Position numbers and translations under genes: made by a program. Below the pieces are notes generated by a model. It ran no database searches. It worked only from the letters and a program-made list of their open reading frames with translations, and was not told the DNA's origin. Shown here piece after piece: positions 7,911-46,669 of a DNA stretch of 64,000 bases (position 1 is its first letter; each line of letters begins with the position of its first letter). This DNA comes from Rebecca billardiae RCC1528. Taxonomy: Eukaryota > Protista > Haptophyta. The stretch lies in contig OZ251233.1 in the NCBI GenBank assembly GCA_965240325.2, positions 2,232,001 to 2,296,000 on the forward strand, in the 5' to 3' direction.

Positions 7911-8768
7911 GACCCGTTGCACGGGTGAGTAACCGTGAGCGTATGAAAAAACGACAAGCGTATGAAATCTCGCGGTTTTGTCGCTCGCGCTGCCGCATGG
8001 CTGACGTCCGCGCCGATCCGAGCGCAATGGTGCATTGCGAAGCCGATTCGCAATGCACCAATCCAATCCGCATGTCAATCGACCCAACCGTCGCTGAGAA
8101 CGAACGACAAAACCCAGGGCAGGTGTCCACCACGAAGCCACGCCGCGCGCGCGCTGGCAGCGTGAGCCGGCGCGGTTGCAAAGGGTTGCCCAAAGGCAGA
8201 GAGATCAGCCAATGCGGCTACCTTCGGCAAGCACGCCACCTCAGCGTCAGCATCGGGTGGGGCCGTGAGGATACATGCCCTTGGATGCGGCTCCAGCCAA
8301 ACGGCTCTCGACGCGGGGAGCCGCCATCGGCCGCGAGCGCGTACACGGATACACGTGCTGTCCTCGTGAACGAGGATTCAGGAGACGAGGCGCGGCCCGC
8401 GATGCGCAGGCAAGACCTAGGGAGTGGCTCACGCTTTGATCGCGGGTACGGGTACAGAAGGCGTGCGCACGCAACCACACCGCCTTCGTGAAGCGCGTGG
8501 GCAAGCTGCTGAAGCTCTCACGATGCGCGCTTACTTCTCATCTCCGTGCGCTCGCCGACCGCTCACGCTGCCTTCCGCGCGGCGGACCTGGGAAACCTGC
8601 CACCTGGCGCGCACGACGCAGCGCGTAACGCGGAAGGTGGTAGATCTGCTGCCACGCTCCCGCTGCCGCCGCCGGCGGCGGCAGCGGCATGCCCACGATG
8701 CGGCGACGGTGCTGATGACTATCACTGCCAAAGTGTCGTTTTTTCGGCGCTCACGCGTGCAACGGGTC
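7911..8768. mobile_element. Non-autonomous TIR element (GACCCGTTGCA ends, 4-bp TSD GACA), family copy 1
   Basis: Left end gacccgttgcacgggtgag...aaaaaacgaca; right end tgtcgttttttcggcgctcacgcgtgcaacgggtc; both flanks gaca; related copy at 35731-36586. Confidence 0.8.
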
Positions 8769-9253: not shown

Positions 9254-10697
9254 TAATGGGGCACCTTGACTGCCCCCCAGCCCCGTTTTTGGCCGCACGA
9301 TTGCGAATCTCAGAGTTACTTGGCCAGTCAATGTTTAGAGTTTTGAAGAAGGCGAAAGACTATCTGGCGGCCGAAACGAGGGACGGCTGTCCCGATGGCG
9401 TTCCGGCCGCGAAGTCCGCCGGTGCCTTGCACGAGGGCGGCCGATCAGTGGCGCCTAGCCCGGTCGTCCGCGCGGTTGTGTCAGCGCACGCGCCATGTGT
9501 GTGCCCCCCACTGTCACGGCATGTTGTGCGCCAGCACCGTGGGAGCTCCTCGCCTGTTCCTGTCACTCACGGCCAAGCGACGGTGCAGAGATCTTCAGTC
9601 CGAGCCCGCGACTGCTGAACTTCTGTGATACGTGTGCGATTCCTTGCAGAAAAGCACGCTCTGCTCCCGCAAATCTACCTGGCGAACGTGCGCTGGTGTC
9701 AATGCTTCACGCAGTGCACAAATGCCATGGCGAATCAGTCTTCCCTGCGTGTCACAGGCCTTGGCGTTTGCACATCGACAAGCTAACGGAGACGAGTCCC
9801 GACGAGCTGCGTATGGCTGTGGTCGCATGTAGTGTGGGCGTCGAACGCCGGAGAAGGTGGTGGCTGAAGGCGATAGAAGTATGCTCTCCCATCTGGTACA
9901 AGCCAGGCTTGGAAGACGTCTGCTTGCATCACACACACAGCTTACGCCGACCCGTGCGACGTGAAGCGCCTCAAGCGTGACGGAAGCAACCCAAGGTGCG
10001 CGCAAGGCGTGAGGAGCAGGGTGATCTAACCTTACGCGGGCCTGCTCATCTAGCAGCGCACTCAGTAGATCGGCCCCGTCCTCAGGCGCACGATGACCAC
10101 CGAATCGTGAATGTGTAGACGCTGACGAGTGCCAGCTTGCGGCGAGCAGCGACCGTGCAGAGGACTCGGGCCTCGCGCAAGAACAAGCAGGTTTTTTTGG
10201 CGCGGAGGACGCTAGCATGACCTGCACGTACAGCGGGGAGATTGTTTGCAAGGCGTGCCCTACATACAGCTCGCGTGCCCCTCAGATATCCCGCGCGGAG
10301 AACGTCAGCAGCCCAGCATCGCAGTCCGCGCCGCAGCCCCAACCACTCAGCTCCGCCCCTCGCCCACCACGAGACGGCGAGATACCGTCAACGAAGTGGA
10401 ACGGAGCGAGCATCTATTTCCCGCGGGAGCCGATGTGATCATTTTTCATTGAGCGAACCCGCCCGAGCTGGCTTCCCATTGGACGGATTGGCGGCTGCGC
10501 TACTCCGCAAGGCGAAACACTTACAGCTTCACATCCCGAAAATGCAAGTTTGGACAATAGAGTGAGGCACCCTCCTCCAATGAAACTGCTGAAAATCCCG
10601 ACGAAACTTTACTGACGTACGTCAGTAAACGCAATCTCCGGGAGATATGGCCATTTCCGCCCACTGGGGTCATTCAAGGTGGGGGCGTGCGCCATAA
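9254..10697. mobile_element. Possible degenerate TIR element / TE remnant
   Basis: Lower GC than the genes and no convincing ORF; ends show gapped inverted similarity (taatggggcaccttgactgcccccc vs rc ttatggcgcac..caccttgaatgacccc); perfect palindrome tttactgacgtacgtcagtaaa at 10608-10629. Confidence 0.3.
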
Positions 10698-31852: not shown

Positions 31853-33190
31853 TCATGGGCTGGGCGTCGCGCCCGCCGACGAGCGCGCCTGCTGCTCCCA
31901 GTAGTGCACCGGGTCGCCCCACTCGCCCCACGCGATCTCCTTGCCCGCGGTGCGCACGCGCAGCTCGAGGCAGCCGCGGCACTGCGTCGCGGTCTCGTCG
32001 AGGCACGGCTTGCCCTCGTACAGCTGGTAGTTGGCGCGCGTGTCGGTGGGCGTGAGGATCGGCATCAGGATGTTAGCGCCGCGCCGCAGCGCGACCTCGC
32101 GCCCGTCGGCGCGGATGGCCTGGAGCGCGGTGGTCGCGGCAACGTTGACGTCGCCCATCGTCAGCCGCGCCAGCGCGACCATCCTGGTCGTGCGCTCGAA
32201 GACCCACTCCTTGTACCGCTCCTTGCTCCACCCCTTGGCCTGCAGCTCCTCCATAAACATCTCGCCGACCGGCGTGCCCGCCTCGTACACGTACGGGCCC
32301 ATGCCCACCATGTCGATGGACTCGCGGCGGAACCAGAGGAGGTCGCGCGCCTGGTCGGCGGTGGTCTGCGTGGGCAGCCCGATCATCACGCCCGTGCCCA
32401 GCTGGAACCCCAGCTCCTGCAGCTGCTTGAGGCAGCCCGCGCGCGTGTGCCACGAGTGCAGCTCGTCGGCTGGGTGGATGCGCGCGTACAGCTCGGGGTT
32501 GGACGTCTCGATGCGCAGCAGGTAGCGGTGCGCGCCCGCGTCGAGCAGCGCGCGGTAGTGCGTGAGCGGCAGCTCGCCCACCGAGAGCGCGACCCCCAGC
32601 CCTTTCCGGCCGCACGGCTGCGCCGGCCTGCCCGACGCCTCGTCCATCGCCGTGGTCTCGGCGCGGATCGTGCGGATCACGTCGCACAGGAAGTGCAGCC
32701 GCTTCTCGCTGAGCAGCTCGCCGCTCTGCAGCATCACGCTGCCGTACTGGTGCTCGTGCGCCCACTTGGCGATCTCCACGATGGCGTCCTTCTCCATCGT
32801 GTACCGCTTCACCTCCGCCATCTTCTTGCGGATGCCGCAGTAGCCGCAGTTCTTGCGGCACACGTTCGAGAACTCGATCAGCCCGCGGAAGTGGACCTTG
32901 CCCTTGTAGAAGCGGTCGGTCACGGAGTCAGCCTGCAGGTACAGCGCCTTGAGCAGCTTCTCGTCCGTCGACTCGAGCAGCGTCTCCAGCGCGGGCTGGT
33001 CGAGCTCGACCGTCTCACCCGGCTCGAGGCTTTCCTTGCCCACAAACGCGGCGAACGGGCGCGTGCGCGAGCGGATGACGTCGGGCGCGAGCGGCGGCAG
33101 CGGCGGCACGGCGAGCGAGCGGGTGCGGCCGGCGAGGCGCCACTTGAGCGCCTCGCGCGGCGCGCGGCGTGACCAGCCGGCGCGCAACAT
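31853..33190 (-). CDS. hydE: [FeFe]-hydrogenase H-cluster maturase HydE (radical SAM)
   Basis: RGLIEFSNVCRKNCGYCGIR (CX3CX2C), YLLRIETSNPELY, GTGVMIGLP.QT, DMVGMGPY, ATTALQ, GANILMP, YQLYEGKPC and CX7CX2C; intronless. Confidence 0.95.
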   Translation of the reverse strand: MLRAGWSRRAPREALKWRLAGRTRSLAVPPLPPLAPDVIRSRTRPFAAFVGKESLEPGETVELDQPALETLLESTDEKLLKALYLQADSVTDRFYKGKVHFRGLIEFSNVCRKNCGYCGIRKKMAEVKRYTMEKDAIVEIAKWAHEHQYGSVMLQSGELLSEKRLHFLCDVIRTIRAETTAMDEASGRPAQPCGRKGLGVALSVGELPLTHYRALLDAGAHRYLLRIETSNPELYARIHPADELHSWHTRAGCLKQLQELGFQLGTGVMIGLPTQTTADQARDLLWFRRESIDMVGMGPYVYEAGTPVGEMFMEELQAKGWSKERYKEWVFERTTRMVALARLTMGDVNVAATTALQAIRADGREVALRRGANILMPILTPTDTRANYQLYEGKPCLDETATQCRGCLELRVRTAGKEIAWGEWGDPVHYWEQQARSSAGATPSP

Positions 33191-33486
33191 CCCGCGCGAT
33201 GGACGCCGCCTAGCCGGTCAGTTGACCACGGCGCGGTCCTGGCTCGAAGTGGCGAGCCGTGCGGCTCGCGCTCTTACACGGGCATCGATTCATTCGACCG
33301 TAATGTATGCGCAGCGGGCCAATCAAGGGCGGTCGGCTGGCGGAAACTTCACAGCAGGGTGGGATTTGACCACGGAATGGCCCTGAATCTGTGAGGTTTG
33401 GACGTTTGGTGCGGCCGACCTGGCTCCAACGCGAACCAATCGGAAAGGCCTGCTTGGTCAGTCACAGAGCGGGCACGAACGGTCCG

Positions 33487-35097
33487 ATGTCGGCGTACGC
33501 GCTCCGCCGGGCGGCGCTCATGCTCGGCGCGCGGCGGCTGCCGGCGGCGGCGTGCGCGCGCGCCGGCCGGAGGGCGCTGTCCATGGCGGCGAAGCCGCAG
33601 GAGCTCAGCTGGGCCGACGCGAAGAAGATGCCCTCGCCGTCCGCGGGCAAGAAGAAGCCGGGCCCGGTGAAGGGCAGCGACGTGCCGCGGCTCAACATCG
33701 GCATCTTCGGCGCGATGAACGCGGGCAAGTCGCTGCTGATGAACCGCATCACGCGGCAGGAGACGTCGATCGTCGACTCCACGCCGGGCACGACCGCGGA
33801 CACGAAGATCGCGCTCCTCGAGCTGCACGACATCGGGCCCGTGAAGCTGTTCGACACCGCGGGCGTGGACGAGACGGGCGCGCTCGGCGAGAAGAAGCGC
33901 GCGAAGACGCTGGCGAGCCTGAAGGAGTCGGACCTGGCCGTCGTCGTGATCGACGCGAACGCGCTCGGCGCGGGCCGCGCGCAGCAGCTCAGCTGGGAGC
34001 GCGAGCTGCTCGAGGCGGCCGCGCACGGCGGCGTGCTCCCACTGCTCGTCGTGAACGCCAAGCGCACGCAGGTCGACGCGGCCGCGGTCGAGGCGACGCG
34101 CGCGGCGCTGTGCGACGGGCTCGGCGCCAAGGCCGCCGAGGGCGCCGCCGCGCGCGGCGCCGCGCTCGCGTACCAGCCCTCCGACTTCGCCGACGCGCCC
34201 GCGCTCGCGGTCGACCTCGCGGACGAGCGCGAGGCGATCCGCGCGCTCACCGCCTTCCTGCAGAGCAACGCGGCGCGCGTCAAGGCGTTCATGCCGCGCG
34301 CGCTGCCGGAGCGGTACCTGCGGCCCGACGCGGGCGTGTTCCTCAACATCCCGATGGACGCCGAGACCCCCTCGATGCGCCTCCTCCGGCCGCAGGCGCT
34401 CGTGCAGGAGGACGCGATCCGGCACTGGGCCACGACCGTCTCTTACCGGATGGACCTCGGCGCGGCGCGCGGCGCGGACGCGGACGCGCGCGACAAGGAG
34501 AAGGCGCGGTTCCAGCGCGCGCTCCGCGCGGCGATCGAGGCGTGCCCGCCCGACGCGCCGAAGATCCTGATCACCGACTCGCAGGCCATGGACGTCGTGC
34601 ACCCGTGGACGCTCGACGAGTCCGGCGCGCCGCTGATCGACGTGACGACGTTCTCGATCGCGATGATGCACCGCATGAGCGGCGCGCGGCTGCCGCTCTT
34701 CGCCGAGGGCATGCGCAAGTTCATGCAGCTCGCGCCGGGGGACCGGGTGCTGATGGCGGAGGCGTGCAACCACAACCGCATCACCGACGTGTGCAACGAC
34801 ATCGGCATGGTGCAGATCCCGCAGATGATCGGCGCGCAGACCGAGGGCATCGAGATCGAGCACGCGTTCGGCCGCGAGTTCCCCGCGCTCGACAAGGGCC
34901 TGGGCAGCTACGACCTGGTGATCCACTGCGGCGCGTGCATGATCGACCACCAGAAGGTGCGCGCGCGCATCGCGGACGCGCTCGAGGCCGGCGTGCCCAT
35001 CACCAACTACGGGCTGCTCATGTCGTACGCGTACAACGGCGCGGCCGCCCTCGAGCGCGTGCTCCAGCCGTGGGAGGACAGCCACGGCGCGCACTGA
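33487..35097 (+). CDS. hydF: [FeFe]-hydrogenase H-cluster maturase HydF (GTPase/scaffold)
   Basis: IGIFGAMNAGKS, SIVDSTPGTTAD, DTAG, ITDSQA, TTFSI, EACNH...DIG..QIP, IHCGACM, VPITNYG; intronless. Confidence 0.95.
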   Translation: MSAYALRRAALMLGARRLPAAACARAGRRALSMAAKPQELSWADAKKMPSPSAGKKKPGPVKGSDVPRLNIGIFGAMNAGKSLLMNRITRQETSIVDSTPGTTADTKIALLELHDIGPVKLFDTAGVDETGALGEKKRAKTLASLKESDLAVVVIDANALGAGRAQQLSWERELLEAAAHGGVLPLLVVNAKRTQVDAAAVEATRAALCDGLGAKAAEGAAARGAALAYQPSDFADAPALAVDLADEREAIRALTAFLQSNAARVKAFMPRALPERYLRPDAGVFLNIPMDAETPSMRLLRPQALVQEDAIRHWATTVSYRMDLGAARGADADARDKEKARFQRALRAAIEACPPDAPKILITDSQAMDVVHPWTLDESGAPLIDVTTFSIAMMHRMSGARLPLFAEGMRKFMQLAPGDRVLMAEACNHNRITDVCNDIGMVQIPQMIGAQTEGIEIEHAFGREFPALDKGLGSYDLVIHCGACMIDHQKVRARIADALEAGVPITNYGLLMSYAYNGAAALERVLQPWEDSHGAH

Positions 35098-35730
35098 GGA
35101 GGCGGAGGGAGGCCGGCTGGCGGCTGAGGGCGGGGTCGCCGCGCCGCGCGGTCCGGTGCAGCGGCGGCGCACACCGGCCAGCATGCGCAGGCCACGCCGC
35201 GCGCTCACCCACGCCCGGTTGGCACCGCCGGTCCACGGGCACGGAGCGCGCTTGCCGTGGTTACTGGACTATGCGCGGTCCGACGGTGTGACCGGCCCCT
35301 GCGGTGGATGGGCAGTCGCCAGTCGGCGCGGGCCAGCCTCTGAGTCTGACTGAGTCGGAGTCGACTGTAGACCTCAGTCTGCCGTGTTACTCAGCTCGTC
35401 CAGTGATGAGTCACGCGTTAAATGAAACCGTAGGGCCCCGGCTACGGCCGCTACGGCCACGGGCGCGGTCTCGGGTCTCGGCCCGACTCTGTCTCTGTAG
35501 TCTGTTACTCTATCTGCTGTACTTGTAGCCCGCCTGGGCGCCGTATAGAGCAGTCGCGTACTGATGACGTACGCCAGACGTACGTGCCAGCAGGCCCAGC
35601 AGCCACCGCCGCCAGGCGCCACGCCGCGGCACTGATGCGGTTGCCACGAGCCGCGCCGAGCCGGCACGCCGCACGGGCCGCGAGGCCGCGGTCCCAATTC
35701 CCATGGGCTGTGACGAGTGTGAAGTGTGCT

Positions 35731-36586
35731 GACCCGTTGCACGGGTGAGTGACCGTAGGGCGGTGAAAATGCGACGTACCGGTGAAAATACGGTTTTGCA
35801 ACTAGCGCTGGGCGATGGCTGCCGGGCGCGACGAGCCGAGCGGATTGGTGCACGGGGAATCCAATTCCCCGTGCACCAATCCAATCCGTTCGTCGCCAGG
35901 TGCTGCCGTTGCCGAGATCGAGCTGCAAAACCCTCAGCAGGTGGTCAAGAGAAGGAAACGGGGAGGGCTGTCGCAGCGCGCGCGCCGCGGTGGGAAGAGA
36001 GAAGGGCTTGCCTCCCAACTGCAGCTTTGGCAGCGTTCCCTCTTGCGGCAGTGGAAGCCGACGACGAGGAGGATGACGACGCAGCTGCTGATGACTGCTG
36101 CGAAGCAGCAGCGGTGACACTCTGCGGTGCACAGCTGCCACCGCGCGCGCCGCACGCGACTCGGACTCGGGTGATGGCGACAGCAGCACAGCAGTCCTCA
36201 TGAAGACGATGAAGCTGCGTGCACGGGTGCACGAGGTGGCAGGCGAAAGCGCGCCGACGAGACAGCTCTTGACACGCCTGAGCGCACGCCCATGCTCGCC
36301 GAGCGCGAGCGCTGCAAGTGCAACTACAGTGCGCGCCGCGCGGCAAGTGGATGCAGGCTGTACTCGGCGGCACTGCGTCCGCGGCCATCGTCTCTTCACT
36401 TGTCGAGGCTGCTGCTGCGGCGGGCCGGGGGCACTACCCGGCACGCGCGGCGTAGCGCGCTAGACGGAAGGTGATGGTAGACGCACTGTCACGCTCCCGC
36501 CGCCGCCGCCGCCGCCTGCAAGACTGTATCGTCACTCTAGGCCGCCGAAGTGTCGTTTTTTCGGCGCTCACCGCTTGCAACGGGTC
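35731..36586. mobile_element. Non-autonomous TIR element (GACCCGTTGCA ends, 4-bp TSD TGCT), family copy 2
   Basis: tgct|gacccgttgcacgggtgag ... tgtcgttttttcggcgctcaccgcttgcaacgggtc|tgct; 856 bp versus 858 bp for copy 1. Confidence 0.82.
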
Positions 36587-36774
36587 TGCTTCAGATGGGC
36601 ATGACTCAATGAGACCGTGACTGTGAGCCGCTCCGCGCGCACGCGGCCCTCGACGCCATCGCCAGCTTCATCAGCTTGGCCGTTGGGCCCGCCGCCGCCG
36701 CCGGCCGCGTCGCCCCGCCGCCCCGCGCACTGTGACTGGTGAATGGCTTAGCGACGCTACCGGAAGGCGGCTGC

Positions 36775-37551
36775 TTATGCTGACGAGGCGCCTCTGCTTC
36801 CCACCAAGAAGGTGAGGGCAAAACGCGACTGCCACTCGTCGAGGACGTCGAGCTGACGCTCCGTGAATGCACATGCCGGCCGGGCGAGCTGCCGATCCAC
36901 CGCCGCCAGGGCGCGCAGCACGGTGAGCAGCGCGCGCACGGCCTCCACGTGCTCATCGCCCGCCTGTGCGCCCGCCTTGGCCAGGCGCTTGAAGCCAGCG
37001 GCCTTGGCGCCGTGCAGCGGCCCTGTCTGCAGCGCCTGCTGCGAGACGAGGAAGACGCGCGTGGCGAGCTCCTTTGAATCGCGCAATGCGCCCTCATCGC
37101 CGAGCGCGCGGCACAACCGCGCGTGCGCGTCGATGGCTGGGAGCCAGGCGCGCACGGCGTCTGCCGGCCGCATAGCGCATGTTGCGCTCAGTGACTGCTG
37201 CACGCTGTCAATCGCACGATGCGCGGCGCGTTCGCGTCGACGCGCCTCTGCCCCGTCCACGTCATCCACCTCGGCCTCGACGGTGTCCGCATGCGCCTCT
37301 GCGCGGCTGTCGCTGAGGGGCATCGGTGGAGGCATCGTGGGAGCGCCGCCACTGTCCTCGGCTGCGGGCGCGTGCGCGACCGCGCCATTGTCGAGGGCAT
37401 GCACGTCCTCGTCGGCGTCAGCGGGTGCCCCTGCTTCTGTGCGCCGTCGGCTGCGCTGCGCCTGCAGCCCCTCGCGCTTCTGACGCCCCGACGCTGGCTT
37501 GCGGCGCAGGCCGGCGAATGGGTGGCGCACACCATGCGAGCGATCCGCCAT
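36775..37551 (-). CDS. Hypothetical protein (258 aa), divergent from hydG
   Basis: ATG-initiated, protein-like composition with a helical C-terminal half (QQALQTGPLHGAK..FKR...FTERQLDVLDEW); function unrecognised. Confidence 0.6.
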   Translation of the reverse strand: MADRSHGVRHPFAGLRRKPASGRQKREGLQAQRSRRRTEAGAPADADEDVHALDNGAVAHAPAAEDSGGAPTMPPPMPLSDSRAEAHADTVEAEVDDVDGAEARRRERAAHRAIDSVQQSLSATCAMRPADAVRAWLPAIDAHARLCRALGDEGALRDSKELATRVFLVSQQALQTGPLHGAKAAGFKRLAKAGAQAGDEHVEAVRALLTVLRALAAVDRQLARPACAFTERQLDVLDEWQSRFALTFLVGSRGASSA

Positions 37552-37866
37552 TGTACGACTGCTTTACTCCTGCCGCTACTGTTTTACCCCCCCGCGGTGA
37601 GTTCGTGAGCCGGTTGGGAGCCAGCCTGACGCCGATTCGAGATCAAATAATGAAGTTCGGTCGGGCTCCGACGGGTTTGGTTGCCGCTTCGCACCAAACC
37701 CCGGCGGGCGCACGCGATTGGCCGACGAGCCAGCTGCTCACGGCAACTCCTTTTCTGATAGGGCTGCCGCTCAGGCACGTTTGCACGAACTTACTACTGC
37801 GTCGTCAATCGGCCGCGTGCGTCGCCGCCGCGCGGCCAACGTCCCGGTCCAACCGCAACCGGCTTC

Positions 37867-39579
37867 ATGTGGCGGCGCACGAGCACAGCGCGGGCGGCGG
37901 CGGCGGGCGCGGCGCGGCGGCGCGCCGGCGGTCTGCTGGTGGGCAGGGGTCGGCGGTTCTCGGGGCTCACGCGGCAGCAGGAGCACGGCTCGAAGTGGAG
38001 TAAAGAGCTCGACCTCGAGGCGTCGGCCAAGGTGCCGCCCGCGAGCGAGATCATCGACGAGGCCGCCATCTTCAAGGCGCTCGAGGAGACGAAGGAGGCG
38101 GCGAAGGACGTCAACCACGTGCGCGCCGTGCTCGCGAAGGCGCTCGAGCGCGCCACGCTGCAGAAGGTCGAGGGCGAGCTCACCTCCGAGTACGTGCAGG
38201 GGCTGGACGCGACCGAGGCGGCGACGCTGCTCAACATCGACTCGAGCGACAAGACGATGATGTCCGAGCTGTTCCGCACGGCGCTGGACATCAAGGAGCG
38301 GATCTACGGGAACCGCATCGTCCTCTTCGCGCCGCTCTACCTCGCCAACTACTGCGTCAACTCGTGCACGTACTGCGCGTTCCGCTCGAAGAACAAGCAC
38401 ATCAAGCGCTCGCACCTCTCGGACGAAGAGATCCAACACGAGGTGGAGACGCTCGAGCGGATGGGGCACCGCCGGCTGCTGCTGCTCACGGGGGAGGACC
38501 CGAAGTACACGTTCGACGACTTCCTCCGCGTGGTGAGCGTCGTCGCCGGCGTGCGCTCCGAGCCGTGCGGCAACATCCGGCGCATCAACGTCGAGATCCC
38601 GGCGCTCTCGATCTCCGACTTCAAGCGCCTCAAGGCGACGGGCGAGATCGGCACGTACACGCTGTTCCAGGAGACGTACCACCGCGAGACGTTCAAGCGC
38701 GTGCACCCGTACGGCCCCAAGTCCGACTTCGACTACCGGCTGCAGACGATGGACCGCGCGCAGATGGGCGGCATCGACGACGTCGGGATCGGCGCGCTGT
38801 TCGGGCTGTACGACTACCGCTTCGAGGTGCTCGCGATGCTGCAGCACGCGGGGCACCTGGAGAGCCACTACGGCGCGGGGCCGCACACGGTGTCGATCCC
38901 GCGCATCCGCCCCGCCGACCAGGCGCCCGAGTCGATCCGCCCGCCCATGCCCGTCTCGGACCCGGACTTCCTCAAGCTGGTCGCGGTGCTGCGGTGCGCG
39001 GTGCCGTACACGGGCATGATCCTCTCCACGCGCGAGAGCCCGCAGATGCGGCGCAAGCTGCTGCACCTGGGCATCTCGCAGATGTCGGCGGGCTCGAAGA
39101 CGGACGTGGGCGCGTACGCCAAGGGCGACCAGAAGACCGAGCTCGAGACCTTCGGCACCTCGCCGCACCTAGACCTGCTGGACTCGCTCGACGGGCACAT
39201 TGACGAGGCCGCGACCGCGCCCGTCGACGGCGCCGAGCTCAAGGGCCAGTTCTCGCTGCTCGACCACCGCACGCTCGACGAGATCGTGCGCGACCTGCTC
39301 GAGCTCGGCTTCGTGCCGTCGTGGTGCACGGCGTGCTACCGCCTCGGGCGCACCGGCGCGAGCTTCATGAAGATCGCGAAGAAGGGCGACATCCACAACT
39401 ACTGCCACCCGAACGCGCTGCTCACGCTGCGCGAGTACGTCGAGGACTACGCGTCCGACGACACGCGCAAGAAGGCCGAGGCGGTGATCGAGTCGGAGAA
39501 GGGCACGCTCTCGCGCACGGCCGCGCTCGACCGCAAGCTCGCGAAGATCATGCACGGCGAGCGTGACCTCTACTTCTGA
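37867..39579 (+). CDS. hydG: [FeFe]-hydrogenase H-cluster maturase HydG (radical SAM tyrosine lyase)
   Basis: GNRIVLFAPLYLANYCVNSCTYCAF, GNIRRINV, YTLFQETYH, PYTGMILSTRE, PSWCTACYRLGRTG..FM...CHPNALLTL (CX2CX22C), GERDLYF; intronless. Confidence 0.97.
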   Translation: MWRRTSTARAAAAGAARRRAGGLLVGRGRRFSGLTRQQEHGSKWSKELDLEASAKVPPASEIIDEAAIFKALEETKEAAKDVNHVRAVLAKALERATLQKVEGELTSEYVQGLDATEAATLLNIDSSDKTMMSELFRTALDIKERIYGNRIVLFAPLYLANYCVNSCTYCAFRSKNKHIKRSHLSDEEIQHEVETLERMGHRRLLLLTGEDPKYTFDDFLRVVSVVAGVRSEPCGNIRRINVEIPALSISDFKRLKATGEIGTYTLFQETYHRETFKRVHPYGPKSDFDYRLQTMDRAQMGGIDDVGIGALFGLYDYRFEVLAMLQHAGHLESHYGAGPHTVSIPRIRPADQAPESIRPPMPVSDPDFLKLVAVLRCAVPYTGMILSTRESPQMRRKLLHLGISQMSAGSKTDVGAYAKGDQKTELETFGTSPHLDLLDSLDGHIDEAATAPVDGAELKGQFSLLDHRTLDEIVRDLLELGFVPSWCTACYRLGRTGASFMKIAKKGDIHNYCHPNALLTLREYVEDYASDDTRKKAEAVIESEKGTLSRTAALDRKLAKIMHGERDLYF

Positions 39580-40357
39580 GCGGGGGCACGCCCGCGCCTC
39601 CGTGCTCGCTCTGGCCGCTCGGGGCAACTCGAGTGAGTGACAGTCAGCTCGGCTCGGTGCGGCTCTGATGAGACAGATCGTTGTTCTCTCAAGAGTCACG
39701 CGCCCCGGGCGATGCCCGCCCCGGGGCTACCGGGCACCCCGCGGCCCGGCGCGGCCGCGGGTCCGCCGAGGGCACGGGCCCGGACGGCAGGCCGACGCCG
39801 CCACGGCCGGCATTTACAGCCATACAGCCGACAAATGATTTTCGGAATATATAATAAAAATGAATTTAATTTTAGCGGCGTAATATTTAGTAATGAGTAA
39901 AGTCGCGTCCTCATCATCATCAGTAATATATTCGTCATCCCGGATCAATATTGCATCGTCCGGAGCGGCAGACTGGCAGCGCGTGCGGCGTGATTGGCGT
40001 CGCGCCGTCCGCGCCGCCGGCTTGAAAACTGCCACGGCGCGGCTAGGACACGCCCCAAGTAGTTCGGCCCGCGACCAAGGACCCCAGTTTCTCCCGGGTA
40101 ACAATTCCTCTAACTATTACTCACCCCCGTCGCGCCCGTGAAAAGTGTTACAGGCCGAGCGTAGCAGTAACATGTAACACTCTCACGCCGGACTCACCCG
40201 GACTGCGGGTGTCTGACCGAGCCACGCCGCCTGACTAAACCCTGGCTGAGCACACTGTCAGCCATCACTTTCACTTGAGACCGTCGGTCTCGGATTCTCG
40301 CGGCCCGTTGCCGGCCAGTCCGGGTCCGGGTCCGGGGCCGGGCGGGTGGCGCTGGGC

Positions 40358-40789
40358 CCCGGGAGGAGGCCCCCTGTAACAGCTGTAACACCGTAACACG
40401 TAACAAGTCCGGCGCGGCGAGTCCGGGAGCCGACCGGTCCAGGTCCGGGGCGGGCGGGCCGCCAGGCCCGGGCCCGGGAGGAGGCCCCCTGTTACAGCTG
40501 TAACACCGTAACACGTAACACAATGGCGCCGCTCGGCCATGGCCCGTCGTCGGCCCGGTGAAAAAATGGCGGCGGGGCGCGCGGCGCGCAGCGTCGCGCT
40601 CGGTGCGCTCGGCGGGGCTCGAGGAACGACTGCGGACGGGCGAGCGCGCACGGGCGCGAGCACGAGTCGCGTCGCCCGCGCCCCTCCCCGAGCGACCTGC
40701 CGCCGCGTCTCGCGACGATGGCGCAGTGGCCGCTCGTCCGTGGCCGCGTGAAAAAATGGCGGCGGGGCGCGCGGCGCGCAGCGTCGCGC
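40358..40789. repeat. Left inverted-repeat arm (2 TGTTAC units plus a 190-bp-period subrepeat)
   Basis: Two gggaggaggccccctgt(a/t)acagctgtaacaccgtaacacgtaaca units, then tgaaaaaatggcggcgggg at 40559 and 40749. Confidence 0.9.
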
Positions 40790-42009
40790 GCCCAGGCGAG
40801 GCGTGCACGCACGAGGTTGTGTTCCTGGCAAGTGGCTCGCAGCGTACGTTCGGCGGCCGGCTGCACGTGCCGAGCAGCCGCCTGCGCGAGCTCGATGCAC
40901 TCGTGGCCGCGCAGCACTTGGTGCACGGCGCGCGCGCGCCCATGGTAGTCGAGGCGCTCGGCGCGCGCGCGCGCTTCGTCGTCGATGTGGACTGCGCCTT
41001 CAGCACCGCGCCCTCCCCCTCGGACGTGGCCGCACTGCTCGTCGGCCTCCACCGCGTCGCGGAGGAGCATCTGCCCGTGCCCGTTCCCGTGGCTGGGCGC
41101 GTCGTGTACGTCTCGGCGCGCGCGCCCAGCCCCGCGACCGCCGCCGGCTCGGCGCCGGGCGTGCGCCGAGCCGGGATTCACGCGACATGGGACGACTCGG
41201 CCATCGTCTCGGCCGCTGAGGCGGCGCGCATCGCGCGCGTCCTGCACGACTGGGCGCGCTCGCAGCCGCGGCCGCCGTGCTGGCACAAGCTCGAGATCGA
41301 CTGCAGCATCTACGGGGCGGGCCTGCGCCTGCCGTTCACGGCCAAGTCGGACGGCGGCCCGCCCTACCTGCCGGCAGCCGTCGTCGCCGCCGACGAGCAC
41401 GGCGCCGTGCGCTGCGCGTGGCTCGACGCGCTGCCTGCGCAGCACGCGCTGCGGCGGCTCGCGGCGGATGGCGCGCGCTGGCTCTCTCGCGCGCGGCTGC
41501 GCACCGAGCTGGTCGAGTGGAGCGCGCCGCCGCCCGCGCCCGGCCGACCGGCTGTGCCGGCGACGAGCGCCGCCGGTCGCGATGCGGCGGCCGGCGCGCG
41601 GCGCGCGGCGCTGGTCGGCTGGCTCAACGAGCAGCTGCACGCGCACGCACGAGTCTCTGGCTCGGCCGAGCGCTGGCCGCGCATCGTGCAGGTGTTTGCT
41701 GGGAGCACGGCGCACGGCCCGGTCGCGACGTGCTCGACCGCCAGCAGGTGGTGCGAGTGCAAGGGCGCCGAGCACGCGCGACGCACCGTCTTCTACTTCG
41801 CCAAGTCCGACGGCCTCGACCTGTGCTGCGCCGACGAGGCGTGCGTGGCAGCGCGCGGCGCCGGGCGCGCGCGCGCCGTCTGCCTGCGCAGCATGCTCTT
41901 CTGCGCGGGCGGCGGCCGCGCGGGCGCGCCGCCACGCAGCGCCGAGTTTGCCTCGCGCTTCCACGCCGCGTTCGCCAGCGGCCGTGCCGCGATGGGCCCG
42001 GCGCGTTGA
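40756..42009 (+). CDS. Archaeo-eukaryotic primase (PrimPol) with UL52-type Zn ribbon, NCLDV A468R-like (417 aa)
   Basis: TH....GGRLHVP, VVE...RFVVDVD (motif I DxD), GIHATWD (motif II His), IDCSIYGAGLRLPFTAK (motif III), PYLP, and SRWCECKGAEH...VFY...CADEAC (C-H-C-C); intronless. Confidence 0.8.
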   Translation: MAAGRAARSVARPGEACTHEVVFLASGSQRTFGGRLHVPSSRLRELDALVAAQHLVHGARAPMVVEALGARARFVVDVDCAFSTAPSPSDVAALLVGLHRVAEEHLPVPVPVAGRVVYVSARAPSPATAAGSAPGVRRAGIHATWDDSAIVSAAEAARIARVLHDWARSQPRPPCWHKLEIDCSIYGAGLRLPFTAKSDGGPPYLPAAVVAADEHGAVRCAWLDALPAQHALRRLAADGARWLSRARLRTELVEWSAPPPAPGRPAVPATSAAGRDAAAGARRAALVGWLNEQLHAHARVSGSAERWPRIVQVFAGSTAHGPVATCSTASRWCECKGAEHARRTVFYFAKSDGLDLCCADEACVAARGAGRARAVCLRSMLFCAGGGRAGAPPRSAEFASRFHAAFASGRAAMGPAR

Positions 42010-42271
42010 CGACGCGGCGGCCGTGCAGCGCGCATGCGCCCGCACGCCGCCGCCGTCGCCGCCGCCGCCGCCCCGCCGCCGCCGCCGCCGCCGCCGCGCC
42101 CACCTCGCGCCGTCGGCCGACGGGCTCGGCAAACGAGGCGGCGTGCAAACAAGGACTCGGCGCTCGCGCCGGGGTCGGTGCAGCGCGACGCCACGCGAAC
42201 CGCCGCGGTGCTCGCGCCCGTGCGCGCTCGCCCGTCCGCGTGCGCTCCTCGAGCCCCGCCGAGCGCACCGA

Positions 42272-42697
42272 GCGCGACGCTGCGCGCCGCGCGCCCCGCC
42301 GCCATTTTTTCACGCGGCCACGGACGAGCGGCCACTGCGCCATCGTCGCGAGACGCGGCGGCAGGTCGCTCGGGGAGGGGCGCGGGCGACGCGACTCGTG
42401 CTCGCGCCCGTGCGCGCTCGCCCGTCCGCGGGCGTTCCTCGAGCCCCGCCGAGCGCACCGAGCGCGACGCTGCGCGCCGCGCGCCCCGCCGCCATTTTTT
42501 CACCGGGCCGACGACGGGCCATGGCCGAGCGGCGCCATTGTGTTACGTGTTACGGTGTTACAGCTGTAACAGGGGGCCTCCTCCCGGGCCCGGCGGCCCG
42601 CCCGCCCCGGACCTGGACCGGTCGGCTCCCGGACTCGCCGCGCCGGACTTGTTACGTGTTACGGTGTTACAGCTGTTACAGGGGGCCTCCTCCCGGG
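42272..42697. repeat. Right inverted-repeat arm
   Basis: Reverse complement of 40358-40789; gccatttttt at 42301 and 42491. Confidence 0.9.
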
Positions 42698-43935
42698 CCC
42701 GGCGGCCCGCCCGCCCCGGCCCCGGCCCGGCCGGCTCCCGGACTCGCCGCGCCGGACTTGTTACGTCGTGTTACGGTGTTACAGCTGTCTGTTACAGGGG
42801 GCCTCCTCCCGCGGGCCCGGCAGCGCGGCCCCGGGGCCCGCCGGCAGCCCCGGACTCGGACGAGCCGGACTTGTTACGTGTTACGGTGTTACAGCTGTTA
42901 CAGGGGGCCTCCTCCCGGGCCGCGAGGCCCGGGCCCGCCGGCAGCCCCGGACCCGGACGCGCCGGACTTGTTACGTGTTACAGGTGTTACAGCTGTTACA
43001 GGGGGCCTCCTCCCGGGCCCGGCGCGGCCGGCCCGCCGGCAGCCCCGGACTCCGGGACGAGCCGGACTTGTTACGTGTTACAGGTGTTACAGCTGTTACA
43101 GGGGGCCTCCTCCCGGGCCGCGAGGCCCGGGCCCGCCGGCAGCCCCGGACCCGGACGCGCCGGACTTGTTACGTGTTACAGGTGTTACAGCTGTTACACG
43201 GGGGGCCTCCTCCCGGGCCCGGCGCGGCCGGCCCGCCGGCAGCCCCGGACTCCGGGACGAGCCGGACTTGTTACGTGTTACAGGTGTTACAGCTGTTACA
43301 GGGGGCCTCCTCCCGGGCCGCGAGGCCCGGGCCCGCCGGCAGCCCCGGACCCGGACGCGCCGGACTTGTTACGTGTTACAGGTGTTACAGCTGTTACTCA
43401 GGGGGCCTCCTCCCGGGCCCGGCGCGGCCGGCCCGCCGGCAGCCCCGGACTCCGGGACGAGCCGGACTTGTTACGTGTTACAGGTGTTACAGCTGTTACA
43501 GGGGGCCTCCTCCCGGGCCGCGAGGCCCGGGCCCGCCGGCAGCCCCGGACCCGGACGCGCCGGACTTGTTACGTGTTACGGTGTTACAGCTGTTACAGGG
43601 GGCCTCCTCCCGGGCCCGGCGCGGCCGGCCCGCCGGCAGCCCCGGACTCCGGGACGAGCCGGACTTGTTACGTGTTACAGGTGTTACAGCTGTTACAGGG
43701 GGCCTCCTCCCGGGCCGCGAGGCCCGGGCCCGCCGGCAGCCCCGGACTCGGACGCGCCGGACTTGTTACGTGTTACGGTGTTACAGCTGTTACAGGGGGC
43801 CTCCTCCCGGGCCCGGCGCGGCCGGCCCGCCGGCAGCCCCGGACTCCGGGACGAGCCGGACTTGTTACGTGTTACGGTGTTACAGCTGTTACAGGGGGCC
43901 TCCTCCCGGGCCGCGAGGCCCGGGCCCGCCGGCCC
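42539..43935 (+). repeat. Tandem array of 14 ~100-bp units with an alternating A/B higher-order dimer
   Basis: Core ggacttgttacgtgttac(a)ggtgttacagctgttacagggggcctcctcccgggcc at ~42645, 42754, 42867, 42964, 43064, 43162, 43264, 43362, 43464, 43562, 43661, 43759 and 43858, plus the first unit at 42539. Confidence 0.95.
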
Positions 43936-44436
43936 AGGAGTGCCGCCGCGGACCGACCACGCCGCTGACTCAGGACGCCGACGGCGTCACGGGGGCGATG
44001 CGGCGCGCCGCCGCGCGGCCGCCGCCGCGCGCGCGCGCCTGACGCGCGCGCTGTCGAGCCGCAGTCCCTCGCGTGCCTGCGCGGGCGGGTGACCGGGGTG
44101 TTACCATCGCTACGGCCGACAGGGCCAAAAATCCCTATAGAAAACATTTCCCCTATGAAGGTAATATGGGTAGCAGAAACTCGGGTCCATACCCCGGCCC
44201 GCACTACTCCGCAGGGTTTGGCCACCGCCGTCAGCGCGTCACCGGCTGGACGGCAGCGGTCGCGTGTCGCTCCGCCGACAGGCGCAGCGGGCGTAGGTGT
44301 GGTGTTGGTCGCAAGGCGTGCCGCGGCTGCCCGAACGTCTCTTGCGCACTAGGGCCGCGCGCGGGCGGCGCCCAAGCGCACAGCTGCCCGGCCGGAGCCG
44401 CCGGTGCCCTCGGGGGCGCCTAAGCGCGCGTGCCGT

Positions 44437-46669
44437 CTACTTGGAGGCGTTGTACTCGGCGGTGAACTTGGTCATCATCTCCTTGATCGAGTCGTCGGTG
44501 CCCTTGGAGAGCGCGCCCTCCGCCTTGATCGTGTCGATCAGGCCCGGGTGCGAGGCCTTGGTGTGCGCGAGCAGCTGGTCGAGGAACGGGCCGACCTGCG
44601 CACACGCGCACACGGACACAGAGAAGAGAGCAGGAGGCGCGCGTGAGGCCGCGAGCGCGCGGCGGCGGCGCGCGGCGCGTGCGCGTGCGCGTGCGCTCAC
44701 CTCCGAGATCTGCAGCTTGTCGAGGAAGCCGCGCGTGCCCGCGTAGATGAGGATCACCTGCTCCTGGAAGGGCAGCGGCACGTACTGCTTCTGCTTGAGC
44801 AGCTCCGTCAGCCGCGCGCCGCGGTTGAGCAGGTACTGCGTGGCCGCGTCGAGGTCGGAGCCGAACTGCGCAAACGCCGCCATCTCACGGTACTGCGCGA
44901 GCTCGAGCTTGAGCGTGCCCGCGACCTGCTTCATGGCCTTGCGCTGCGCCGCGGAGCCTGTGCGTGCGCGGCAAGCGCGGGTCGGCGGCGTGGGCCGGGC
45001 GCGCGCGGCGCGATCAGCCTCCGCCTCTGCGCGCGCGGCGCTGCCGGCGGCGGCGGCGCGCGGGCGCGGCGCCGGGCGCGGCGCCGGGCGCGGCGCCGGG
45101 CGCGCGCGGCGAGGGCGGCGGCGCGCGGGCGCGCACCGACGCGCGAGACGGAGAGACCGACGTTGATCGCCGGCCGGATGCCGCGGTAGAAGAGCTCGGC
45201 CTCGAGGAAGATCTGCCCGTCCGTGATCGAGATCACGTTGGTGGGGATGTACGCGGACACGTCGCCCGCCTGCGTCTCGATCACGGGCAGCGCGGTGAGC
45301 GAGCCCGCGCCAAACGCGTCTGACATCTTGGCCGCGCGCTCGAGGAGGCGCGAGTGCAGGTAGAAGACGTCGCCGGGGTAGGCCTCGCGGCCGGGCGGCC
45401 GGCGGAGCAGCAGCGACATCTGGCGGTACGCGACCGCCTGCTTGGAGAGGTCGTCGTAGATGATGAGCGCGTGCATCCCGTTGTCGCGGAAGAACTCGCC
45501 GATCGTGCAGCCCGAGTAGGGCGCGATGAACTGCAGCGGCGCCGCCTCCGAGGCGGTGGCGGCGACGATGCACGAGTACTCCATCGCGCCCGCCTCCTGC
45601 AGCGTCTTCATCAGCTGCGCCACCGTCGAGCGCTTCTGCCCGACCGCGACGTACACGCAGTAGAGCGACTTGGACTTGTCGCCCGCCGCGTTGATGCTCT
45701 TCTGGTTGATCATCGCGTCGATGGCGACGGCCGTCTTGCCCGTCTGCCGATCGCCGATGATCAGCTCGCGCTGCCCGCGGCCGATGGGCACGAGCGAGTC
45801 GACGGCCTTGAGGCCCGTCTCCATGGGCTCGTGCACCGACTGCCGCGCGATGATGCCCGGCGCCTTCACCTCGATGCGCTGGCGCGTCACCTCGCCCGCG
45901 ATCGGCCCCTTGCCGTCGACCGGGTTGCCGAGCGCGTCGACGACGCGGTTGAGCATGCCCAGGCCGACGGGCATGTCGATGATCGCGCCGGTGCGCTTGA
46001 CCGTGTCGCCCTCCTTGATCTCGCGGTCGTTGCCGAAGACGACGATGCCGACGTTGTCGTTCTCCAGGTTGAGCGCCATGCCCTTGATGCCGCTGTCGAA
46101 CTCGACCATCTCACCGGCTTGCACTTTGCTCAGCCCGTGCACGCGCGCGATGCCGTCGCCGATGGCGAGCACCTTGCCCACCTCCGTCACCTCCGAGGCG
46201 CTCGAGAACTCGGCGATCTTCTTCTCGATGATCGACGAGAGCTCCGACGCCGACGGCTGGTTGGCCTTGGACGACTCTGCGCGGCGCGGCGCGGCGCGGC
46301 GCGATTCGAGGCGGCGGCGGCGCGGAGCCGGCGCGCGGCGCGCGTGCGCGGGGGAGTTCAGCCGGCGGCGAGCGAGCGGCGGCACGCGGGAGCGTGGTGG
46401 ATTTCACGGCGCCCCCCACCCGCGCGGCGTCGCGCGGCCTCGCGGCCGCGCCACGAGCTGGCGCACGCCCCGCGGCCGCGCGAAATCAACGCCCAGACCG
46501 CCGCCGCGCGGGGCGGCGGCCGACCCACGGCGCGCGTGCTCGGGCGCGCACCCGCTGGCCGGTTCGCCCGGAAGTGGCGCGCGCTGCATGCCGCGACGAC
46601 ACGCGTCGCAGCCCGTGCCTCGGGCACGACGCTGCGCCCGAGGGCGGCGAGCGAGCGCTGGGCCAGCAT
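44437..46669 (-). CDS. ATP1: Mitochondrial F1-ATP synthase subunit alpha, nuclear-encoded; introns 46277-46551, 44958-45136, 44596-44700
   Basis: [63 protein letters not shown]; Arg/Ala/Ser presequence [12 protein letters not shown]... Confidence 0.97.

Follow-up and report, generated by a model that had tools for sequence, protein, structure and literature searches.

The enzyme behind self-copying elements in eukaryotes is a reverse transcriptase, a transposase, a Rep-helicase, or a polymerase primed by a protein; to our knowledge, none has been described that is made of a primase and its own repeats. Transpovirons are linear episomes of mimivirus systems, dependent on giant viruses and ~7 kb in length, with several genes including a helicase. 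Foldback elements are multicopy, depend for movement on a transposase encoded by themselves or supplied in trans, and are bounded by target-site duplications, whereas pRN1-type iteron plasmids are circular prokaryotic replicons in which a helicase is usually fused to the primase and long inverted arms are absent. Here, we describe a cassette of ~3.6 kb in a stretch of 64,000 nucleotides (nt) from Rebecca billardiae RCC1528 (GenBank assembly GCA_965240325.2, contig OZ251233.1, positions 2,232,001 to 2,296,000 of the forward strand), referred to below as the window, the positions of which are used throughout. The cassette contains one gene, for a predicted archaeo-eukaryotic primase (AEP), set between long inverted-repeat arms that are built from iterons.

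The cassette resembles transpovirons in its small size, its inverted terminal repeats of a few hundred base pairs, its link to giant viruses, and the lack of a capsid gene; it differs from them in having one gene (the primase) and in being chromosomally integrated. Long unequal arms of tandem subrepeats around a short unique center are common to the cassette and to foldback elements. However, the center of the cassette encodes a primase, and neither a transposase, a clear duplication, nor a second copy within the 64 kb accompanies it. The arrangement most characteristic of pRN1-type plasmids, an AEP initiator beside short direct repeats that vary between relatives, is also found here, but in a eukaryotic nuclear locus with long inverted arms. 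An iteron replicon is recognized by clusters of short direct repeats beside its initiator gene, the sequence of which changes from relative to relative, and the primase is, by this analogy, a putative iteron-binding initiator of replication. The architecture thus shares features with foldback elements, transpovirons, and iteron plasmids and has the gene content of none of them.

Other classes of element were considered and set aside. The cassette is not a Polinton, polinton-like virus, or virophage, having no Pfam match to a PolB, primase-helicase, integrase, capsid, or packaging gene and a length of ~3.6 kb, and the Rep-helicase that characterizes Helitrons was not found by Pfam among the cassette open reading frames (ORFs). 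A giant endogenous viral element was also rejected; the neighbors are host genes, no further cassette ORF is recognizable, and there is no cluster of hallmark genes of the nucleocytoplasmic large DNA viruses (NCLDV). An earlier note on this DNA, made from the sequence by a model, had stated that the locus departs from the gene sets of Polintons, polinton-like viruses, Helitrons, and transpovirons and that it knew of no named class with such a layout. We agree on both points: there is a single gene with no further Pfam match around it, and no class matching this layout was found in the literature on primase-bearing inverted-repeat or foldback elements.

A single primase gene between inverted arms

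The primase gene (40756-42009, + strand) is intact and intronless and encodes a protein of 417 amino acids (aa), in which an AEP domain is followed by a C-terminal C-H-C-C zinc finger. When read from the first start codon, the ORF spans 40558-42009 (483 aa). Because long ORFs are frequent in all frames of the region, reaching 1035 aa across the repeats, openness of the frame alone is weak evidence of coding. That the primase ORF is coding is seen from three other features. Its GC content by codon position (0.77/0.64/0.91) follows the pattern of the host genes (0.91 to 0.98 at third positions), the family hidden Markov model (HMM) aligns with primase positions 1-405 in a single frame, and the motif residues are invariant in an alignment of 11 sequences. 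The AEP catalytic domain (approximately residues 18-210; 40807-41385, + strand) contains motif I (D77 and D79), motif II (G140 and H142), and motif III (D182 with G189-L190-R191), all of which are invariant in this alignment together with K197, Y204, and P206. C333, H340, C358, and C363 of the zinc-finger domain (approximately residues 305-370; 41668-41865, + strand) are likewise invariant.

The primase is the only recognizable gene of the cassette. Ten other ORFs in 39814-44225 gave zero Pfam matches, the cassette region gave no Rfam match, and the 64-kb window yielded no primase, iteron, or arm copy elsewhere. Between the primase stop codon and the right arm is a short unique spacer with a (CCG)n microsatellite (42040-42097); GC-rich low-complexity tracts of this kind also occur elsewhere across the window.

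The left arm (40355-40789, + strand) and the right arm (42272-42700, - strand) each consist of iteron units and a box region. The inverted repeat is made up of segments of 322 nt at 99% and 118 nt at 98% identity. In a gapped alignment of 40318-40789 with the reverse complement of 42272-42760, the arms, ~435 to 470 nt in length, are 98.7% identical over ~465 aligned nt (459 matches, 6 mismatches, and 6 gap events). The left arm includes the primase ATG and the first 11 codons of the gene. The earlier note had described an intact, intronless 417-aa ORF with AEP motifs I to III and a C-H-C-C ribbon, alone between near-perfect inverted repeats of ~430 bp; each part of this description is borne out by the invariant residues, the Pfam results, and the arm alignment, whereas the asymmetry of the iteron arrays, ~2 units on the left against ~13.5 on the right, had been understated.

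Organization of the iteron arrays and boxes

The iteron units are ~100 to 115 bp long and are composed of a GGCCCCC-type frame, four GTAACA-type iterons spaced 7 to 9 nt apart, and an AGTCCGG...GTCCGGG frame. The left array (40318-40520, + strand) has ~2 units of ~115 bp, with iterons at 40376-40405 and 40491-40520. The right array (42541-43933, - strand) extends over ~1.4 kb and ~13.5 units; its innermost three units (109 to 117 bp) are like the left units, and its outer ten units (~100 bp; period, 100) form a 200-bp higher-order repeat with 96% matches. These motifs are confined to the cassette and its immediate flank (40138-43933). The 13-mer TGTTACGTGTTAC, allowing at most 1 mismatch, occurs 16 times in the window, always within 40167-43875, against an expectation of 0.02. 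The composite frame, defined as GGCCCCCTG, 25 to 45 nt, TCCGG, 5 to 10 nt, and GTCCGGG, is matched 8 times in the window, against an expectation of 0.00, and each match falls in an arm.

Next to the arrays lie the box regions. The left one (40521-40789, + strand) contains ~1.3 copies of a 190-bp repeat, with the box GTGAAAAAATGG at 40558-40569 and 40748-40759, and the right one (42208-42540, - strand) mirrors it with ~1.65 copies and boxes at 42302-42313 and 42492-42503. Each arm thus has two boxes, all of them facing inward; the box motif has 4 matches in the window, every one in the arms, where 0.00 are expected. The inner left box (40748-40759) provides the ATG of the primase in an A-rich context.

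Approximately 110 nt outside the left array, a degenerate fragment at 40138-40205 has two CCGGACT motifs alongside GTTAC/GTAAC iterons of either orientation, as well as a one-mismatch copy of the 13-mer at 40167-40179. Its composition suggests that it is a relic of older, rearranged arm material; with it, the cassette measures ~3.8 kb.

The protein is predicted to be a giant-virus-type primase

Direct searches of the primase ORF against Pfam, PHROGs, NCBIfam, and PDB sequences gave nothing useful, and matches to DUF7739 and PcrP were disregarded because they fell below the cutoff. A first search for homologous proteins returned P0001 as the sole relative (452 aa, intact, 37% identity to the window primase). 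An exhaustive search of 1.84 billion representatives, a database that includes pelagophyte proteomes, yielded six relatives, P0001 among them and none from an annotated algal proteome; P0004 has 509 aa, P0006 has 399 aa, and the remaining three are shorter. The window primase has no significant match to the Pfam family PF23162 (AEP_C962R), and its membership in this clade is through linkage, because P0004 (27.8 bits), P0006 (43.2 bits), and an AEP on the viral contig L014 (60.9 bits) exceed the cutoff of 23 bits. Herpes_UL52 (PF03121) is among the precomputed Pfam annotations of P0135 and P0136, and P0006 matches it weakly.

The genomic neighborhoods of these relatives are viral in character. 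P0006 is encoded on a 14.4-kb contig together with capping-enzyme, NUDIX, and TFIIS genes, and its own relatives are lone AEP_C962R proteins of 352 to 433 aa, some of which are endogenous copies in Tetrabaena and Edaphochlamys. P0130 adjoins RING, TBP-like, and DEAD-helicase genes. An HMM built solely from the pelagophyte-type clade of the primase family matches a lone 466-aa AEP on the IMG/VR contig L014 (1e-12), which also bears NCLDV major capsid protein, NUDIX, and cap methyltransferase genes; AEPs on other contigs from IMG/VR and from giant virus metagenome-assembled genomes (GVMAG) were retrieved by the same HMM.

The predicted fold points in the same direction. Two AlphaFold (AF2) models have a moderate overall predicted local distance difference test (pLDDT) score of 63 to 65, with 75 to 89 in the AEP core. 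The best Foldseek matches in the PDB are AEP domains of large-DNA-virus primases (probability, 1.00; E value, 1e-5 to 1e-4), with a template modeling (TM) score of up to 0.58 relative to the isolated AEP domain, and the fold matches in BFVD are NCLDV proteins annotated as "C962R-like AEP." In cellular PRIMPOL, too, a UL52-type C-H-C-C zinc finger comes after an AEP domain. It was nevertheless rejected as the identity of the window protein: no sequence search returned a PRIMPOL, including that of the 1.84 billion representatives, there was no PDB sequence match, human PrimPol is outside the top 50 fold matches, and the distribution of the family is patchy.

Taken together, these results classify the protein as a predicted giant-virus-type AEP with a C-H-C-C zinc finger rather than a cellular PRIMPOL, in agreement with the earlier note, which had named the NCLDV type; the AEP_C962R matches of the relatives, their NCLDV gene neighbors, and the Foldseek results carry this assignment, and chlorovirus A468R, to which the note had likened the protein, is absent from the named matches. 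The closest described proteins are the stand-alone AEPs of algal giant viruses (PF23162 plus a UL52-type zinc finger, ~385 to 470 aa), with which the window protein shares domain order, size, catalytic and zinc residues, and fold matches, and which are matched by the pelagophyte-type-clade HMM. However, their identity to the window protein is only ~20 to 27%, and these viral AEPs (set among viral genes) and their green-algal endogenous counterparts are ordinary genes without iteron arms, whereas the window primase has arms. By these comparisons, the window protein is best placed among the stand-alone NCLDV AEPs, as a divergent representative, and its activity as a primase is predicted.

Some features of the viral contigs may be mentioned here. 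On two NCLDV-like contigs (L005, 10001-11200; L011, 90-1283), the lone AEP lies 30 to 90 nt from the contig end, a position that could reflect chance or adjoining repeats in the viral genomes. The contigs L013 and L018 are giant-virus-like IMG/VR sequences of 46 kb and 127 kb with 68 to 71% GC and could represent viruses, or endogenous copies, of GC-rich algae. L013 (68% GC) has an 11-bp tandem array of ~8 copies with a GTAAC core (10306-10408), ~3 kb from a related AEP; the 5-mer core in common with the window iterons may be a coincidence.

The arm framework recurs at related loci

Sequences resembling the arms were found beside related primase genes in independent data sets. An independent short-read Logan contig (L006, run ERR14847151) matches window positions 36557-39832 at 99.9%, and the run therefore represents the same species as the window. 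The contig encoding P0004 (L004; 32% identity to the window primase) stems from the same run, so that P0004 is a paralogue in the window organism. L004 begins inside a 111-bp repeat comprising GGCCCCCTG, four to five TGCA-type iterons 9 to 10 nt apart, and an ATCCGG...GTCCGGG frame; the composite frame has one match among all other loci, and this match is in L004, on the + strand (the gene strand), ~430 nt upstream of P0004. Downstream of P0004, there is one unrecognized ORF and nothing more.

A second relative (P0002/P0007, 45% identity) is represented by L002, L003, and L009, which are a single locus in three other samples. In L002 and L009, a GAGGCC-type frame precedes up to 5 to 6 iterons of the CCGCACCA type, which are followed directly by an AGTCCGG...GTCCGGG frame and then by the box motif CCATTTTTYCAC (expectation in the window, 0.00); the box lies between the iterons and the gene. 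The primase is alone at this locus, and AT-rich, host-like DNA abuts the arm. In a local alignment of one arm unit, L002 and L009 exceed 150/150 host controls. At a third locus, from another organism in a sister run (L007, 49% identity), CCGGACTT and then CTTTACA iterons lie downstream of the gene, at the contig end, in right-arm orientation. The iteron type accordingly differs from locus to locus: GTAACA in the window, TGCA in L004, CCGCACCA in L002 and L009, and CTTTACA in L007.

Because the framework recurs upstream of a paralogue and of a relative from another organism, gene and arms go together and, as judged from these motifs, form a family. No arms were seen beside the AEP at any of the viral or green-algal loci examined, and a tandem repeat after the L013 AEP falls inside the following gene. 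IMG/VR gave no match to the iteron pattern or to the mixed alignment A2, and JGI metagenome contigs contained no relative detectable with alignment A3. A single match to an iteron 23-mer (L010) was read as chance, since it lies on an AT-rich eukaryote contig without an array.

Two observations concern the sequences of L002 and L009 themselves. An A/T-rich box in L002 (321-439) and L009 (487-600) is shared with window positions 40558-40759. The first 25 nt of L002 (1-25) resemble residual sequencing-library adapter and are not genomic.

Interpretation of the cassette

We tentatively read the locus as a compact, virus-derived selfish cassette of primase plus iterons, the arms being the cis sites of the primase itself, and give this reading a chance somewhat short of even. 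In this scheme, the product of the single gene would be an AEP primase-polymerase of giant-virus type that has a UL52-type zinc finger, and its cis sites would lie in the inverted arms, namely, iteron clusters (four iterons each, set in a conserved frame) and an A-rich box, facing inward, from which the start codon comes. The primase would recognize its own iterons, probably via the zinc finger; zinc fingers determine template choice in related primases. DNA synthesis primed at the iterons would lead to copying of the unit, with the arms acting as origins or ends, and the near identity of the arms would reflect arm-to-arm copying or a recent origin. The locus-specific iterons would correspond to a matched specificity of protein and site, so that iterons and protein co-diversify, as in iteron plasmids. 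Because integrase and transposase are absent, transfer to new sites would call for host repair functions or for help from a giant virus or from a larger relative. The window copy may be active or a recent fossil. Mobility and self-replication of the cassette are inferred.

Several observations weigh against this reading. The cassette has no integrase, transposase, helicase, or polymerase gene (by Pfam, for the ten other ORFs), its outer ends are asymmetrical, and its borders show no clear target-site duplication, with only GC-rich, heptamer-like similarity at the two borders. No extra copy of the window element was found, and neither was evidence of an empty site (the sister run yielded no close HydG orthologue) or of an extrachromosomal form; the other contigs are short and cover one side only, which leaves a single complete arm-gene-arm copy. 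The earlier note had proposed a mobile replicon, either an integrated linear plasmid or a giant-virus satellite, and with neither a second copy nor a clear target-site duplication, that proposal remains conjectural. The GC3 value (GC content at third codon positions) near that of the host fits long residence, and the element's own ORFs, on both strands, are absent from a collection of 15 billion proteins by exact look-up. The arm comparisons are also uneven. In the arm-unit alignment test, L004 reached just 11/150, and L007 was not significant; an nhmmer profile of 16 arm units had no match in the other loci or the host control, so that arm homology rests on short motifs, and these motifs were defined post hoc, with the loci already in view. 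Downstream of the gene in L001, the first 400 nt show no arm. The box of L002 and L009 is inverted with respect to that of the window, relative to both iterons and gene, and because of this opposite orientation it cannot provide the start codon. Finally, L002, L003, and L009 each have one 5' truncation, which takes away the region coding for motifs I and II and leaves the frame otherwise open, and L007 and L008 have two frame changes and one, respectively, both being cut by the contig end; such degraded relatives fit endogenous decay as well as a living family.

It is possible, although on the whole doubtful, that the primase is simply an endogenized viral gene persisting as a host gene, domesticated or neutral, whose repeats are cis-regulatory or unstable flanks. 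The gene would then have arrived by horizontal transfer from a giant virus, the inverted arm would have come about when the promoter and start region were duplicated locally in inverted orientation, and the paralogues would share the frame through joint duplication of gene and promoter, with nothing moving or replicating itself. A codon pattern near that of the host genes (GC3, 0.91), a single copy in 64 kb flanked by host genes, the lack of a mobility gene, and an arm that holds the start codon in an A-rich context, like a promoter or 5' region, all accord with this explanation, as do the lone NCLDV-derived AEPs without arms in Tetrabaena and Edaphochlamys. However, promoter duplication does not account for the 98.7% identical inverted copy of the promoter and start that lies downstream of the gene, nor for the right-arm-type iteron end downstream of the gene of another organism (L007), and the paralogue with 32% identity keeps the frame around its iterons even though the iterons differ. 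In addition, the annotated pelagophyte proteomes of the database lack the family, which has 6 matches overall, so that its distribution is patchy rather than vertical.

Should the cassette instead be the remnant of a larger viral or virus-like linear genome, it would represent either a terminal inverted-repeat region or an internally deleted endogenous giant-virus element. The NCLDV lineage of the primase, the viral contigs with 68 to 71% GC that carry related AEPs, and the relic arm fragment at 40138-40205 speak for such an origin, and terminal inverted repeats with tandem arrays are common among large DNA viruses. We nonetheless consider it improbable, since no other viral genes are found among the codon-biased ORFs of the 64-kb window, the primase of L002 and L009 is alone, with host-like AT-rich DNA at the arm, L004 has a single unrecognized ORF on its downstream side, and no arms adjoin the AEP on the viral contigs examined. 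An internally deleted derivative of a larger viral element, which the earlier note had offered as an option, is disfavored because other loci also have a lone primase. An assembly artifact, such as a collapsed or chimeric repeat, is a very improbable source of the inverted arms or of the long array. No independent contig crosses the arms, the short-read contig L006 stops at 39832, and the ORFs of the element are missing from public gene calls, all of which would suit an artifact; on the other hand, the center is unique and nonpalindromic, 6 mismatches and 6 indels separate the two arms, the arrays of which also differ in unit type, unlike a fold-back read, and in independent data sets arm-type sequence adjoins related genes on the sides and strands that the layout predicts.

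Going beyond the favored reading of a virus-derived primase-plus-iteron cassette, one may ask whether the locus stands for a new class of eukaryotic selfish DNA, which would be primase-only, iteron-armed, and of giant-virus ancestry, with lineage-specific iterons in inverted terminal arms. We regard this broader proposal as unlikely at present, if worth stating. Members of such a class would be copied by their own primase with host factors, or as satellites in giant-virus infection, and pelagophyte genomes would harbor several such lineages side by side. Given a matched pair of primase and lineage-specific iterons, the cassette would rank as the smallest replication module of viral origin found so far in eukaryotic genomes; it would also provide a eukaryotic counterpart of iteron plasmids and a record of traffic between giant viruses and pelagophyte algae, including bloom formers. 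Even as an endogenized gene, it would be an intact giant-virus primase retained in an algal nucleus with unusually structured flanks. What is new here is that the arm framework is also carried by a 32%-identical paralogue and by a 45%-identical truncated relative, with differing iterons.

Genomic context of the cassette

The window has a GC content of ~72%, and the GC3 of its codon-biased ORFs ranges from 0.89 to 0.98. AT-rich islands are scattered throughout the window; they were considered as limits of the cassette and rejected, being commonplace intergenic features within the 64 kb. The end of L006 at 39832 falls inside one such island (39800-39959), and the first 29 nt of the same contig also match window positions 8740-8768, which points to a short dispersed repeat or an assembly break.

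The cassette is placed between convergent host genes, at the 3' ends of HydG and ATP synthase alpha, both of which are outside the element. The right neighbor encodes the ATP synthase alpha subunit (44437-46403, - strand; Pfam ATP-synt_ab and ATP-synt_ab_N); this gene is nuclear and has at least one GC-rich intron with low-complexity sequence. The left neighbor encodes HydG, the radical SAM maturase of [FeFe]-hydrogenase (37867-39579, + strand; Pfam Radical_SAM and BATS), the best named homologues of which are an MMETSP transcript (82%) and the proteins of Aureoumbra lagunensis (80%) and Chrysophaeum taylorii (78%). By these pelagophyte matches, the host is pelagophyte-like, and its own proteome is absent from the named databases. 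Upstream of HydG are HydE (radical SAM; 31856-33217, - strand) and HydF (a GTPase with HydF domains; 33370-35094), so that all three [FeFe]-hydrogenase maturases are encoded in a nuclear cluster within 31856-39579.

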